64,000 bases of DNA, from positions 682,001 through 746,000 of the forward strand of contig NIVC01000056.1 of the NCBI GenBank assembly GCA_002269645.1, written 5' to 3'. Position 1 is the stretch's first letter; each line of letters starts with the position of its first letter. Source of the stretch: Macrostomum lignano. Its lineage: Eukaryota. The notes under the pieces are model-generated. The model did not search any database. It was not told where the DNA came from and worked only from the letters and a program-made list of their open reading frames with translations. Below, in pieces: positions 45,501-51,500 of the stretch. The translations under genes were made by a program, and so were the position numbers.

Positions 45501-48500
45501 TGCCTAATATCTAAAGATCAATGCATATACAATATTTTGTGGATTTTATTGATTAGTTCGGTTCCTGTCCCAGACGTACCCAGTTCGGCACAGGGTGCGA
45601 TTCAGCGTCTCTGTGATGATAGTTGAGCACGATCACCGTGAATACGACTGATAGACTGCACATGATCATGGTGCACGCAAAGTACATGCCTAAAATTGAT
45701 TTAAAAGCAGATTTTTTGTTTAGTTTTTTAAGGCTACAATTGATATTCATGCTAAACAGTTTTTTAAGAATGCTTACTGCATCACTAAAAAGCTTTAACC
45801 ATTCACCATCTAGAAATGCACATGGAAGCAATCCAAAATCGCAACACAATCCACATGGAAGCAATCTGACATTCAACAACAATCCACATGTAAGCAATCT
45901 GCAATCGTAACACAATCCACATGGAAGCAATCTGACATTCAACAACAATCCACATGTAAGCAATCCGCCATTCAACAACAATCCACATGGAAGCAATCTG
46001 ACATTCAACAAAAATCCACATGGAAGCAATCTGACATTCAACAACAATCCACATGTAAGCAATCTGCAATCGTAACACAATCCACATGGAAGCAATCTGA
46101 CATTCAACAACAATCCACATGTAAGCAATCCGCCATTCAACAACAATCCACATGGAAGCAATCTGACATTCAACAAAAATCCACATGGAAGCAAGCTGAC
46201 ATTCAACAACAATCCACATGGAAGCAATCTGACATTAAACAACAATCCACATGGAAGCAAGCTGACATTCAACAACGATCCACATGGAAGCAATCTGACA
46301 TTCAACAAAAAGCCACATGGAAGCAATCTGACATTAAACAACAATCCACATGGAAGCAAGCTGACATTCAACAACGATCCACATGGAAGCAATCTGACAT
46401 TCAACAAAAAGCCACATGGAAGCAATCTGACATTCAACAAAAATCCACATGGAAGCAATCTGACATTCAACAACAATCCACATGGAAGCAATCTGACATT
46501 CAACAAAAATCCACATGGAAGCAATCTGACATTCAACAAAAATCCACATGGAAGCAATCTGACATTCAACAACAATCCACAGGGAAGCAATCTGACATTC
46601 AACAACAATCCACATGGAAGCAATCTGACATTCAACAAAAATCCACATGGAAGCAATCTGACATTCAACAACAATCCACAGGGAAGCAATCTGCAATCGT
46701 AACACAATCCACATGGAAGCAATCCACAATCACAACACAATCCACATGGAAGCAATCCACAATCACAACACAATCCACATGGAAGCAATCCACATGGAAG
46801 CAATCCACAATCACAACACAATTCACATTGAAGCAATACACTATTCAACAACAATCCACTTGGAAGCAGCCCTTCATTTAACAACAACCCATGTGGAAGC
46901 AATTCACTATTTAACAACAATCTGCATGGAAGCAGCTCTTCATTCCACGTGATTTTTCATTTCAAACATTCTTTAAATTGCCAAACCAATAGTAGTAATA
47001 AAACAAATTCGAAATAAAACTCAAAACAAAAATTACAAGAAAGGTTATTAATAGTGCATAAACGGTGCCCCCTCCCATTGTCTCACCAATAACGGGAACC
47101 GCATCCGAAGTCGGTGGCATGGCCTCGGCCACCATCATGAGAAACACGGTCAAGGACAACAGGATGGTAACACCTGTGCTCGCCAATTCGAATGTTGTCC
47201 CATAGCGAAGGTGAGAAACAAAGGATATCGAAAATTAACAAAAAAATCGTTGCATTGTATTTGTGCTTTGCAACATTTAAACAAAAATTTACGATTATCA
47301 AGTCATTAATTTTACAACGTATTTCGCGCACACCTACACTGTTCTATCGCTAGAAACAATTTATTTTCAAAAACTAAAAAAGTGTGCATGGCTGGTAAGA
47401 TTGGCAGGCACGGAATGACCGGATCGTTTTGCCAAAATTGATTTTCAAATAAATTAAATAAAACAAATATTAATATAAAAAAACGCGTTAAACTTACAGT
47501 TAAACAAAATTGACGTTGTTACGTATGATTAAAAGATATTAATTATTTTGAAAATGAGAAGTCAGCAAACGATTTAAACAAAATTGTTTTTACTTGCTTT
47601 AAAACTGTTAGCTCACCAATAAGTGGCACCGCTTCGGAAGTCTGCGGCATTGCGTCAGCCACCAGTAGTTGAAACATTGTTAACGACAACATTATTGTCA
47701 CTCCTAGAGTTGTCATTGAAATGTACTTTTACTGCAAATTATAGATTATAGCAAATTATATAGGCCATGCTACAACAGCTAGTTATGAATGGGCTTATGT
47801 TCTACTACAGTTTTAGGTAAGAACAGTGCGCAGTGCTGGGTAAGTTTTTTTGTGAAAATTTTTACTTCAAATTCGTTGATCTGTTTAGAGTGTGCACCAT
47901 AGAAACTCCACCTGTTAGACAGAATTTACACACACCTGTTAGACACAAGCTACACACACCTGTTAGACACAAGCTACACACCTGTTAGACACAAGCTACA
48001 CACCTGTTAGACACAAGCTACACACACCTGTTAGACAAAAGCTACACACCTGTTAGACACAAGCTACACACACCTGTTAGACACAAGCTACACACCTGTT
48101 AGACAGAAGCTACACACCTGTTAGACACAAGCTACACACACCTGTTAGACAAAAGCTACACACCTGTTAGACACAAGCTACACACACCTGTTAGACACAA
48201 GCTACACACCTGTTAGACACAAGCTACACACCTGTTAGACACAAGCTACACACACCTGTTAGACACAAGCTACACACCTGTTAGACACAAGCTAGATATA
48301 AACACACGTCTTTTGCTACGAGTAAACTTCTTTTAGTGTAGTTCCAAACTTATACGAGCAGGTAGCTACGACACAACTCGTAGCAGGTAGATAATAGAAA
48401 TGCATGCGACAGAAAGTGCTCATGCAACAATAAGTTTGATTAAATGACAAAAATATCAACTTTAAACTAAGCTTTCTATTCCGATTGTTACAAATATAAA

Positions 48501-51500
48501 TTACCTGCTACATTACTCGATGCCAATAGATTTTTTATCGGGTTAAAAACAGTTTAAATTGGACTTCAGAGTAGGACTGTTAGAATAAATCTAAGCAATA
48601 GTGGAGATGAATCCATTCAAAAAATACGACAGTCAACCAAGGCAGACAGACAGTCATGCCAACAGCCACAATTTCTAAAGTATTCGAAGATATAATTTTA
48701 AAATATTGCACTCAATAGCCCTAGCAAGGTGCAATCGTTGAAAAACAACAAACTGAAAGGAACGTAAGCCCACCCAGTTGTCTGGAGCGGCGCTCTGATG
48801 TGCCAGCGGCCCAGGCTCGATTCCAAGTGCAGTTACATTAATTTGTGGCTACATTGGAATCTATGCTCGTGAAATTAACGCTCAGCTTGAGGCCCGAACC
48901 CCAAGGCACAGTGAAGTGTACATGCCTAACGATAGATAAAGTTAGGGTCGCTGTACACTCCTGTGTGAGTGTGTGCCTGTGCGTTTGACTGCGTACGTAT
49001 CCGCGCGCTTGTGTGCCTGCTCAGGGGAGTCGGCGGAATGGTGGCAGTAATGCCTCTCGCCGGTTGTGTGACAATGTCGCCTACTTAAAATGCCTCTAAT
49101 AAAAACGGACGCACCTAAAGAGATTTTCTCGCCAGCATCGGGCGGCAAGATGAAGGTGAGTAGCGCCATAGACGAGATGAGCACGCATGGGATGATGAGG
49201 TTAAAGCCATAGTATAGGGTCCGCCTGCGGATCTTAATATGATATCGCAGATCTATGAACGGATGCGGGCAGCAGTCGTAGGTAATGGCGAATCTTTGAC
49301 AGGGCATCTCTGCAAAGCACAGTCAGATTTAAATAATTGCACAGATAATTTGCATAGGGTGTTGCCTTACCGAACATTTTTTAGTGCGCGTGACGCGTCG
49401 TCAATAAGGTTATCTAAGGTGGGTTCTTTTAGAGCAGCTGGACCAGGAACCAGACGTCAAAAATCATCAAAAAAGTGACTTCGTACTGCACGAAAATGAA
49501 TGGGATATACCGTGCTAATTGTGCTATATATCGATAGACAAGCTGCAAGCAGATTAAACGTGAAAATTATAATTTCAACAGTTGTGCGTGTTGAAGACAT
49601 GCATTAATGTGTGCATTTGTTTGTTGAAGTACACATGAATTTCAACTGTTCACTTGGTCAAGACCTTGCTAGAGAATCTTACCAGCCATGCTGCACTCTA
49701 TAGCTTTTTGCAGCCCATTTAGGCTTATACACATTGAATTTATTCCAAGACATGGTTACATATAGTAATGGAGCTTTTGTCTATGGTAGCAAGTTTGGCA
49801 CAGGTCCAACATTCCACTGCACCAATACAGGGTGACGCCAAGAATACAATCTGCTCAGTTACAACAAAAACAAAATAGCATTTCAGCATGTTCAAAACTT
49901 CACAAACAAAAGCTCCATTACTTTGGTAGACATATCTTGGATTAAATTCAATGCATGTAAGCCCAGATCTGGCCTGCAGAAAGCAATATTAACCATTTGT
50001 ACATTGCACACTGATCTATGGAATGCGATTCGCCCTCTTACCGAAGCTGACTTTCTCGCCAGCATCAGGCGGTATGATGAAGCTTAGCAGAGCTAGGCAA
50101 GCCAAGAATGAGCATGGCGCTATCAAGTTGAATATGTAATAAAGTTTTCTCCGACGTATTTTCATGAAGAATTCCAGATCTATGAATGGATAGGTGCAGC
50201 AGTCGTACAGATTACTGTGTCGAATGCCGGGAATCTCTGCAAGCCAAATGCGGGGAAGTTTTCGCACTTTGTGGACAGATTCTGCTACACCAAAAGTGCA
50301 TTAGCAATCGGATAAGAAAGTTCGAAAGTTCCTTTCTTATACTCGTAGAATTGCTCTTTTTATTGCCAATCGTTCAGATTAACAGGATCTTCTTTTGCGT
50401 AAGGAACCGCTGCAGCTAGTTAGCTAGCGCTAGGCACCTGGTTAACCCTTATGCCTGGGGTCTCTAGTCCTCTCCTCTCCTCTCCTCTCCTCTCCTCTCC
50501 TCTCCTCTCCTCTCCTCTCCTCTCCTCTCCTCTCCTCTCCTCTCCTCTCCTCTCCTCTCCTCTCCTCTCCTCTCCTCTCCTCTCCTCTCCTCTCCTCTCC
50601 TCTCCTCTCCTCTCCTCTCCTCTCCTCTCCTCTCCTCTCCTCTCCTCTCCTCTCCTCTCCTCTCCTCTCCTCTCCTCTCCTCTCTCTCCTCTCCTCTCTC
50701 CCTCTCCTCTCTCTCTCCTCTCCTCTCCCCTCCTCTCCTCTCCTCTCCTCTCTTCTCTCCTCTCTCTCCTCTCCTCTCCTCTCCTCTCCTCTCCTCTTCT
50801 CTCCTCTCCTCTCCTCTTCTCTAATCTCATCTCCTCCTTCTCATCTCCCTTCCTCTCCTCTTTTCTCAATCTCTCCTCTCCTCTCCTCTCACCTTCTCTC
50901 TTCTAGTGTTTTTCCTCGTCTCCTTTCCCATATATCCCTTATCTCTTCTCAATTATCTTTCCTCTCTCCCCTGTTCCAGTCCGTAGTCATGCTCTAGGTA
51001 TCTGGCCGTTGAAATGAAAACGTCAGCTGACTTCTGCCTTAAGCAGTGTAAATTGTGTTTAAATTAGTAAATCATCTTTTAAACTGCAAACGGAAATAGC
51101 TAAAAATAACAAATAATAACAAAAAATCGCAAATTACCGAGGGAGAAATTATGCAATAATTAGTAGTTCCAGTTTTTTCCACAAAAATTTAGCTCCGTTT
51201 TCTTCAACTAGATTTGATCAGCCGTCTAGCATAACTGGTTTAATCGTGCTAAACAAACTTTCAACAGTTGGGATAACTTCAAGCTTTCCCTTAAATTAAT
51301 AATTAATTCGTGTTATCGACTCCGCGCTCGTTCGATTTGTTTTGCTTTAATGACGCATGATGGATTGATTAACCGAAAGCTCCTGACGCGGCCCAACAGC
51401 CTTGTTAGGCTTTTGCCTTAATCCCCCTCCCCAATACCTAGCCTCTCGTGTTCTGTTTGATTATGCAGACTCGACAACTCTGAAGCGAAAAAGCATGTTG

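Follow-up and report, generated by a model that had tools for sequence, protein, structure and literature searches.

Long-range complementarity between the introns of two alternative exon clusters in a nicotinic receptor gene of Macrostomum lignano

A nicotinic receptor gene with tandem alternative exons

We analyzed a window of 64,000 nucleotides from the flatworm Macrostomum lignano. Its minus strand carries an alpha7/alpha6-like nicotinic acetylcholine receptor gene. The matches to this gene carry PF02931 and PF02932, and the identity to alpha7/alpha6 subunits from arthropods and spiralians ranges from 45 to 66%. The YDCC motif with the vicinal Cys-Cys of loop C, the segments TM1-TM4 and the stop codon were all found in the window; this identifies the gene product as a nicotinic subunit.

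The gene contains the tandem exon pairs 3a/3b, 7a/7b (loop C and TM1) and 8a/8b (TM2). Exon 7a (50042..50236; this exon and those that follow lie on the minus strand) encodes the YDCC of loop C and a TM1 segment with the C-terminal end GEKVSFG. It is bordered by the acceptor ag/AGATTCCC and the donor TTCG/gtaaga and is used in the database model P0123, whose exons match those of the window. Exon 7b (49115..49309) encodes a canonical alpha7-type TM1 and ends with GEKISLG. The two exons are 195 nt long each and 63% identical at the nucleotide level. Exon 8a (47617..47703) encodes a variant of TM2 and exon 8b (47087..47173) a canonical alpha7-type TM2; here the variants are 87 nt each with 72% nucleotide identity. 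The exon 8 pair is followed by the constitutive exon 9 (45580..45689), which encodes TM3. Exons 7a/7b and 8a/8b are genuine tandem, homologous alternative exons of equal length.

Clusters 7 and 8 are adjacent, with no constitutive exon in between, and other means of enforcing an exclusive choice are unavailable in them. Steric exclusion is inapplicable because the 7a-7b and 8a-8b introns measure 732 and 443 nt respectively; the reading frame is kept on double inclusion because the lengths of the exon 7 and exon 8 variants are multiples of three; and all donors in the two clusters are GT and all acceptors AG. A scan of the exon 3 cluster for pairings returned only low-complexity ones, and an Rfam search across 45000-52500 gave no credible match.

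Complementarity of the dock with selector 8b at two loci

A preliminary description of this DNA had proposed that a docking site between exons 7a and 7b pairs in the pre-mRNA with selector sequences upstream of exons 8b and 8a. The sequences of all three elements were recovered at the minus-strand coordinates assigned to them. The dock, AGTGCAGCATGGCTGGTAAGATT, is located at 49697-49675 on the minus strand (core AGUGCAGCAUGGCUGGUAAGAUU, 49675..49697), 344 nt past the 7a donor and 366 nt ahead of the 7b acceptor. Selector 8b, AATCTTACCAGCCATGCACACT, is located at 47402-47381 on the same strand (AAUCUUACCAGCCAUGCACACU, 47381..47402); by the exact exon bounds it ends 208 nt upstream of exon 8b, in agreement with the distance of ~210 nt given before.

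The helix between dock and selector 8b has the predicted 17 perfect base pairs, which are followed by a 2/1-nt bulge and 4 more base pairs (-32.8 kcal/mol). With its flanks it extends to about 37 bp and -48.6 kcal/mol, and the pairing then spans ~49709-49663 on the side of the dock and ~47414-47368 on the side of the selector. The strength of this pairing was examined by shuffle tests with ungapped complementarity scoring and windowed folding. When the two elements were linked in a hairpin construct, the energy was -46.6 kcal/mol (z = -8.1), and none of 200 shuffles was as good. The ungapped complementarity score between the dock intron and the selector 8b intron was 44, a value which was equaled by 0 of 500 dinucleotide shuffles. 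The previous estimate of the probability of a chance match, in the order of 1e-3 or less, also holds: we expect ~8e-5 perfect complements of 17 nt between these two introns and ~1e-3 between any pair in the 6.6-kb span from exon 5 to exon 9. Even with local competing structure the gain from cofolding was -34 kcal/mol versus -9 +/- 3 kcal/mol for shuffled partners. With a transposon palindrome and satellite repeats set aside, dock and selector 8b form the top long-range pair of the exon 5-9 span. The complementarity is genuine and greatly exceeds the chance level.

The introns of the gene are rich in young repeats, and one of these, a MITE-like palindromic repeat (49699..49988), separates the dock from the 7a donor. 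The distance from its right arm to the dock is 2 nt. The 5' extension of the dock helix is inside this arm, which has its own partner; the dock core is outside of the MITE. A second copy of the MITE occurs at about 45128-45286. The insertion is young, and without it the dock would be located ~55 nt past the 7a donor. This environment gives some weight to the view that the complementarity is non-functional and could have been left behind neutrally by an inverted duplication or by transposon activity. The uniqueness of the 17-mer argues against this view: it occurs once within the window and is absent from the other M. lignano DNA compared, and with no further copies an origin from a dispersed repeat was rejected. 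Among stems flanking single exons only one around exon 7a stood out in the window. This stem was judged incidental because it derives from the MITE arm and is missing in the paralogue described below.

The contigs L001 and L003 count as a single paralogue locus because single-base indels are their only differences; the comparison covers two independent loci in all. The proteins of the diverged paralogue are ~80% identical to that of the window, and a blastn comparison of the introns of the two loci detected no similarity except for shared repeats. The paralogue keeps the same 7a/7b and 8a/8b exon pairs. Its only strong long-range pair in the exon 5-9 span connects the 7a-7b intron with the region upstream of 8b; the pairing sites are 25-70 nt past the 7a donor, which agrees with the position of the window's dock if the MITE is disregarded, and 70-100 nt upstream of 8b. 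The helix comprises a 13-bp perfect core within 44 bp (-55.6 kcal/mol, z = -5.8; 0/500 shuffles), albeit with a modest gain when local competing structure is considered (-21 kcal/mol; best of 40 shuffles -21.1). At both loci such a pair occurs only once in a span of 5-6 kb, and it joins the same two introns. Significant complementarity between the introns that flank the enclosed exons is hence present at two independent loci; if neutral, introns that are otherwise impossible to align should not have kept the same topology.

With regard to conservation in related introns, which the preliminary description had proposed as a check, the two loci share this topology and not the sequence. When the window's dock and selectors were locally aligned with the paralogue introns, the corresponding elements were missed and the scores were non-significant; the sequences are unrelated. 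An alignment by hand of the window core GCAUGGCUGGUAAG with the paralogue core GAAUGGAUGAUCAG contained 4-5 apparent compensatory changes; these were dropped, as the alignment is not significant. Base-pair covariation is not countable because the docks and selectors of the two loci have no detectable homology. The idea of a weak 8b acceptor was also abandoned, since it is true in the window and false in the paralogue.

Other loci were also compared. A third paralogue, L002, contains only one 7b-type and one 8a-type exon. Exons of the 7a type, homologous to that of the window, occur also in a nemertean and two annelids; the orthologues of these animals have 7a/7b and a single exon 8. The nemertean orthologue has a long 7a-7b intron, in which no significant pairing with the intron upstream of exon 8 was found. 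The 7a-7b introns of the annelid orthologues are only about 69-146 nt long, and no such duplex was found there. Further M. lignano paralogues and a near-identical second copy of the gene are known as the UniRef protein models P0121, P0126 and P0244.

The results from the nemertean and the annelids are in line with a non-functional complementarity, as is the lack of demonstrable homology between the elements of the two independent loci compared; the paralogue duplex would then be coincidental. Against this stand the location of the dock core outside of the MITE and the shuffle tests, in which the observed score was not reached at either locus separately. Furthermore, the only such pair at each locus joins the same two introns, which makes a double coincidence very unlikely. 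We regard a non-functional origin as distinctly unlikely.

The proposed selector 8a and the donor-like motif

The second proposed selector, 8a (AAACTTACCCAGCACTGCGCACT, 47847-47825 on the minus strand; AAACUUACCCAGCACUGCGCACU, 47825..47847), ends 122 nt upstream of exon 8a, close to the ~120 nt stated before. A helix between the dock and this element can be drawn as proposed, with 21-24 bp interrupted by bulges and -22.6 to -28.2 kcal/mol, but it is no better than chance. In the hairpin construct it reached a z of only -0.78, and 43/200 shuffles were as good. When the dock was compared with the 300 nt upstream of 8a in the window, 8/100 shuffles were as good, and the corresponding number for the region upstream of 8a in the paralogue was 12/100 (p ~0.1 in both cases). 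The dock has several better partners than selector 8a elsewhere in the pre-mRNA.

These data bear on a classical competition of the Dscam type, in which the dock would alternate between selectors 8a and 8b and in this way choose the exon 8 variant, while both helices loop out 7b. In favor of such a system, the two helices as drawn overlap on the same dock nucleotides, so that the pairings would be mutually exclusive, although the selector 8a helix is itself unsupported. The two selectors also provide the best local alignment between the window's two upstream introns, but their similarity is non-significant (142/300 and 31/300 shuffles as good). The cofolding gain of dock and selector 8a in the presence of local structure was -19.3 kcal/mol versus -10 +/- 3 kcal/mol for shuffles. 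In the paralogue, the best partner of the dock in the intron upstream of 8a is likewise close to 8a. This candidate element, however, is located at -49 to -11 from the 8a acceptor; within the last 50 nt of the intron a pairing would cover the branch-point/pyrimidine region and mask 8a rather than activate it. The best partner of the paralogue's selector 8a is a repeat elsewhere. After four tests, none of them above chance, selector 8a was rejected as a second selector. Since its helix is indistinguishable from chance at both loci, the two-selector competition suggested in the preliminary description is unsupported, and we consider it an unlikely explanation.

The dock was further said to contain a consensus donor that would be masked by the pairing. 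The motif CTG/GTAAGA is present in the dock of the window, but GGTAAG is not conserved in the paralogue's dock; donor masking is unlikely to be a conserved function of the pairing. In a related scenario the dock would be a decoy 5' splice site (CUG/GUAAGA), which binds U1 snRNP and is masked by the U1-like selectors (ACUUACC), and the pairing would tune the 7a donor or a cryptic exon. The near-consensus donor in the dock fits this, as does CUUACC, which is contained in both selectors and also in the 5' end of U1 snRNA. The paralogue dock, GAAUGGAUGAUCAGGGUGGC, nevertheless lacks any donor-like motif, and its pairing with the paralogue's own selector 8b is just as good. A decoy function is in our judgment highly improbable.

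Proposed effect on splicing and relation to known systems

In the preliminary description either helix was expected to loop out 7b. For the helix between dock and selector 8b this is supported by geometry, with 8a looped out as well. We propose that dock and selector 8b pair as a long-range intronic duplex in the pre-mRNA. Because clusters 7 and 8 are adjacent without a constitutive exon between them, this duplex would close a loop of ~2.3 kb that holds exons 7b and 8a. It would place the 7a donor beside the acceptor of exon 8b, which lies directly downstream of the duplex; 7b and 8a would be jointly skipped and 7a spliced to 8b. A link from 7a to 8b is therefore the natural consequence of such a helix, which could act on the two clusters simultaneously and link the choices of TM1 and TM2. 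If, alternatively, exon 5 were spliced to 7b, the dock would be lost together with the intron removed, and 7b would by default join exon 8a, which is nearer (7b-8a). The search for an element that accounts for the skipping of 7a and 8b in this alternative state returned none.

The choices of exon 7 and exon 8 may be coupled, as is suggested circumstantially by gene models in databases and by one paralogue whose exons are fixed. The predicted models of this gene and of its near-identical copy (P0123 and P0244) contain 7a and 8b and skip 7b and 8a, while the predicted NCBI models of the paralogue (P0130 and P0140) contain 7b and 8a. The pairing probably helps to join 7a to 8b. We consider it somewhat better than an even proposition that exons 7b and 8a, the inner ones, are looped out by the duplex and that 7a-8b is thereby favored. 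More tentatively, and with the balance leaning against it, a single conserved helix could be a two-cluster switch which swaps a whole TM1-TM2 module, outer 7a+8b versus inner 7b+8a. The origin of such a switch would be in Macrostomum: the annelid orthologues could rely on steric exclusion, for which the Macrostomum 7a-7b intron is too long.

Flanking reverse-complementary matches are known to favor exon circularization, and exactly two internal exons, both with canonical splice sites, lie between the two arms of the duplex. The pair might thus mainly yield a circular RNA of 7b and 8a (282 nt), with linear 7a-8b as a by-product or absent. The paralogue, however, has kept the arrangement around exons that are alternative coding variants, and this suggests a role in choosing between linear isoforms; back-splicing as the main outcome seems very unlikely. 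The two processes are not mutually exclusive. The inverted complementary segments around internal exons resemble the matches that promote circular RNAs, but those are usually derived from repeats and not conserved in position; the flatworm sequence is unique and its layout recurs in the paralogue.

How separate alternative splicing choices are coordinated in one transcript is an open question. For Dscam, the clusters are generally taken to be selected independently of each other, and all RNA-structure systems for mutually exclusive exons known to us act within one cluster. If the proposed looping by dock and selector 8b is correct, one helix would physically link the choice of the neighboring pore-forming helices TM1 and TM2, a simple mechanism for making matched TM1-TM2 combinations only. 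It would also extend docking/selector-like control beyond arthropods and vertebrates. The two-cluster switch, if real, would according to the literature searched have no precedent in flatworms as a docking/selector-like RNA bridge, and none described anywhere as a bridge that couples two clusters. M. lignano is amenable to transgenesis, which makes tests with compensatory mutations feasible. If the coupling is false, a well-supported long-range intronic helix next to alternative exons remains, which is of ordinary interest.

The insect nicotinic receptor alpha6 has the mutually exclusive exons 3a/3b and 8a/8b/8c (PMC1919356). The flatworm gene resembles it: the subunit is alpha7-like, and the 45-nt exon 3 and the TM2 exon are doubled in equivalent positions. 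It differs by the additional doubled loop C/TM1 exon (7a/7b), which adjoins the TM2 pair. Neither an RNA-structure mechanism for the insect alpha6 gene nor dock/selector control in nicotinic receptor genes or in flatworms is described in the literature searched.

The proposed mechanism is a variation on docking/selector and looping-out mechanisms. Exon 6 of Dscam1 is governed by a docking site and selector sequences (Graveley 2005, as summarised in PMC6071210). As in Dscam1, the duplicate exons are arranged in tandem and equal in length, the pairing is between one intronic element past an upstream exon and another before a variable exon, and, as proposed here, the intervening variants would be looped out and the exon right after the selector joined. 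Unlike Dscam1, which has a selector at each variant, only the selector of 8b is statistically supported here. The dock is furthermore not beside a constitutive exon but between the variants 7a and 7b; because it is inside the neighboring cluster, both clusters would lose one variant to the loop. The host is a flatworm and not an arthropod, and the gene is not known to have a repressor or activator component. Alternative exons are looped out by long-range pairing between introns in other genes as well, among them human ATE1 (R1-R5; PMC7797038) and Drosophila 14-3-3 zeta, Mhc, MRP1 and srp (PMC4691838, PMC6071210). These share with the flatworm gene complementary intronic boxes which are kilobases apart, a mutually exclusive choice between two exons and the detection by complementarity and conservation. 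While each of these structures acts within one cluster, the predicted flatworm helix spans two adjacent clusters; a single helix of this kind predicts that the two choices are linked.

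A minus-strand nicotinic receptor gene with paired exons

Six-frame translation and tblastn searches with database homologues place the dock and both selectors in a minus-strand gene of the Cys-loop receptor family, the product of which was identified by protein searches as an alpha7/alpha6-like nicotinic subunit. The exons were mapped by the same two procedures, and all are on the minus strand. Exon 2 encodes the N-terminal region (57884-57717, the open frame that holds it, its 5' border being unmapped) and is followed, beyond the exon 3 candidates described below, by exon 4 (about 52984-52868) and the large ligand-binding exon 5 (about 52352-52024). 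Exons 7a (50236-50042) and 7b (49309-49115) have 195 nt each and encode loop C, with its YDCC motif, and TM1; exons 8a (47703-47617) and 8b (47173-47087) have 87 nt each and encode TM2. TM3 is encoded by exon 9 (45689-45580), and the final exon 10 (43178-42564) contains TM4 and the stop codon. An AG acceptor and a GT donor flank all four of the exons 7a, 7b, 8a and 8b. The M. lignano UniRef protein P0123 matches the exons of the window; its model includes 7a and 8b and omits 7b and 8a, as does a second, near-identical model, P0244.

Exon 3 (45 nt) is also doubled, with candidates 3a (55086-55042) and 3b (54250-54206). The same doubling occurs in an M. lignano paralogue (contig L001, 21732-21773 and 23528-23572), in the nemertean Lineus (locus L004, 62458-62502 and 62606-62650) and in a Capitella model. 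It sits where insect alpha6 has its 3a/3b pair, so this cluster may date back very far or have arisen repeatedly. With repeats set aside, no complementary pair was found around it.

A second nicotinic-receptor-like gene lies downstream (22861-14741, minus strand), with TM1 and TM2 in a single exon. Its TM3/loop exon is present in two tandem copies with nearly identical 3' parts (15601-15197 and 15130-14666), which are explained by recent tandem duplication or else by an error of assembly. Also in the window are retrotransposon reading frames that resemble integrase and contain a tandem duplication (2-1063 and about 1600-2700, plus strand), a polo-like-kinase-like gene (6881-8504, plus strand) and a PDZ-domain gene (39740-38710, minus strand); the paralogue in L001 likewise has a PDZ gene beside it.

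Complementarity of the dock to the two proposed selectors

The three elements of the preliminary description were all located where it had placed them: the dock at 49697-49675, selector 8b at 47402-47381 (208 nt upstream of exon 8b) and selector 8a at 47847-47825 (122 nt upstream of exon 8a). It had proposed that the dock pairs with both selectors. The helix with selector 8b is well beyond chance in both energies and shuffles; that with selector 8a can be drawn, but it is at background.

The dock and selector 8b form a perfect core of 17 bp plus 4 bp (-32.8 kcal/mol), which extends with its flanks to 37 bp (-48.6 kcal/mol). As a hairpin construct the pair has an energy of -46.6 kcal/mol (z = -8.1, 200 shuffles), and in 500 dinucleotide shuffles of both introns the observed complementarity score was never reached. 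In the presence of competing local structure, cofolding gains 34 kcal/mol; with shuffled partners the gain is 9 +/- 3. When the whole 6.6-kb stretch between exons 5 and 9 was scanned against itself, this pair ranked first among the long-range pairs, a transposon palindrome and satellite arrays being set aside. The 17-mer occurs once in the window and not at all in a further 77 kb of M. lignano DNA. Dock and selector 8b are unique sequence with repeats on either side.

A true competition of two selectors for one dock is possible and would use the drawable 8a helix, but the data do not support it for 8a. The hairpin construct with selector 8a has a z of -0.78, 8 of 100 shuffles of the 300 nt upstream of 8a equal the pairing of the dock, and the dock has several stronger partners elsewhere in the pre-mRNA. 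Furthermore, the likeness between selectors 8a and 8b is not significant.

Several repeats lie close by. A SINE-like repeat (48773-49105) lies 10-20 nt past the 7b donor and has copies at 56332-56647 and 19283-19526 and in L001. Satellites with units of 46 and 33 nt (47909-48294 and 45815-46934) account for a large share of the introns that precede selector 8a and follow 8b. A MITE-like palindrome (49988-49699, second copy at about 45128-45286) lies directly 5' of the dock. Its left arm is complementary to the acceptor region of exon 7a (50254-50234 with 49982-49962; 1 of 200 shuffles as good), and this is the sole stem around 7a in the window. The paralogue lacks such a stem; the MITE stem is therefore probably incidental, though it could affect the use of 7a in the window copy.

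Paralogues and orthologues

Three M. lignano contigs were compared with the window. L001 and L003 differ across the region by single-base indels alone and were counted as one locus. The protein of this paralogue is about 80% identical to that of the window, and the exons are organised in the same way (3a/3b, 7a/7b, 8a/8b); blastn detected no intron similarity beyond shared repeats. Between exons 5 and 9 the paralogue has one strong long-range complementarity, and it again joins the 7a-7b intron, 25-70 nt past the 7a donor, to a region 70-100 nt before 8b. The helix has 44 bp around a perfect core of 13 bp (-55.6 kcal/mol, z = -5.8; matched by 0 of 500 shuffles), and each element is the other's best partner. 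Without the MITE-like insertion the window dock would lie about 55 nt past the 7a donor, so that the dock positions in the two genes agree better than was first apparent.

The sequence of the paralogue helix is unlike that of the window. When the two cores were aligned by hand, compensatory changes seemed to emerge, but local alignments did not support them: the window elements did not pick the corresponding elements in the paralogue introns and reached no significance. What is conserved, as far as sequence comparison goes, is thus the layout, and base-pair covariation is not claimed. One alternative is that the pairing arose neutrally in introns rich in repeats. Such an origin would hardly explain why it exceeds all 500 shuffles and links the same pair of introns in both of two independent loci.

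The donor-like motif of the window dock had suggested masking of a decoy donor, but the paralogue dock contains no such motif, and this lack of conservation makes the reading unlikely. The candidate 8a element of the paralogue is marginal (equalled by 12 of 100 shuffles) and overlaps the final 50 nt before the 8a acceptor, so that pairing there would hinder 8a rather than help it. The third paralogue (L002) has one exon 7, of the 7b type (13387-13581), and one exon 8, of the 8a type (14244-14330), and by sequence carries the inner pair as a fixed combination.

By sequence comparison the 7a/7b pair is old. Both types, recognisable by their shared diagnostic endings (GEKV/L..G for 7a, GEKISLG for 7b), occur in the nemertean Lineus and the annelids Capitella and Owenia, at 76698-76889 and 77679-77873 in the nemertean locus and at 4925-5119 and 5270-5464 (L005) and 49311-49505 and 49578-49772 (L006) in the annelid loci. 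With about 146 and 69 nt, the 7a-7b introns of the annelids are of a length at which steric exclusion is plausible, and they do not pair significantly with the next intron. Those of Macrostomum and Lineus have 650-790 nt; the long Lineus intron yields a borderline pair at most. Among these species the helix has so far been observed in Macrostomum alone. Exon 8 is single and 8b-like in all three others, so 8a looks like an addition of the Macrostomum lineage inside the region enclosed by the helix.

Predicted splicing and known systems

With clusters 7 and 8 lying side by side, the inner exons 7b and 8a, and no others, fall within the loop of the helix. If the helix acts as in known docking/selector and looping-out systems (PMC6071210, PMC4691838; ATE1 in PMC7797038), it would bring the 7a donor close to the 8b acceptor, so that 7b and 8a would be skipped and 7a spliced to 8b. 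No other known route to exclusivity is open in this gene, since the introns are long (7a-7b, 732 nt; 8a-8b, 443 nt), all splice sites are GT-AG, and the lengths of exons 7 and 8 are multiples of three, so that double inclusion keeps the frame. If exon 5 were spliced to 7b, the dock would be removed along with its intron, leaving 8a, which is nearer, as the default partner; the two main products predicted are thus 7a-8b and 7b-8a. Circumstantial support comes from the two 7a+8b models of the window gene, the 7b+8a NCBI models of the L001/L003 paralogue and the exon types of L002. For the alternative state, no element was found that would account for leaving out 7a and 8b. The inverted pair could also promote a circular RNA of 7b and 8a.

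On balance we lean towards the helix being a functional splicing element that favours 7a-8b. Full coupling of the exon 7 and exon 8 choices is a more tentative proposal, which we hold to be doubtful. Of the earlier interpretation, the link of 7a to 8b by the strong helix is retained; the weaker 8a selector is unsupported and the donor masking unlikely.

The helix resembles Dscam-type pairing in that it would work as a docking/selector or looping-out helix. However, it lacks two features that define that family, namely a supported selector for every variant and a dock beside a constitutive exon. Exon 3 and TM2 clusters comparable to these exist in insect alpha6 (PMC1919356), for which the papers searched describe no RNA-structure mechanism, and the searchable literature contained no such control for nicotinic receptor genes, flatworms or the coupling of two clusters. 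The distinctive point is that one helix spans two adjacent clusters, and the two-cluster prediction, drawn from two loci, is specific and directly testable.
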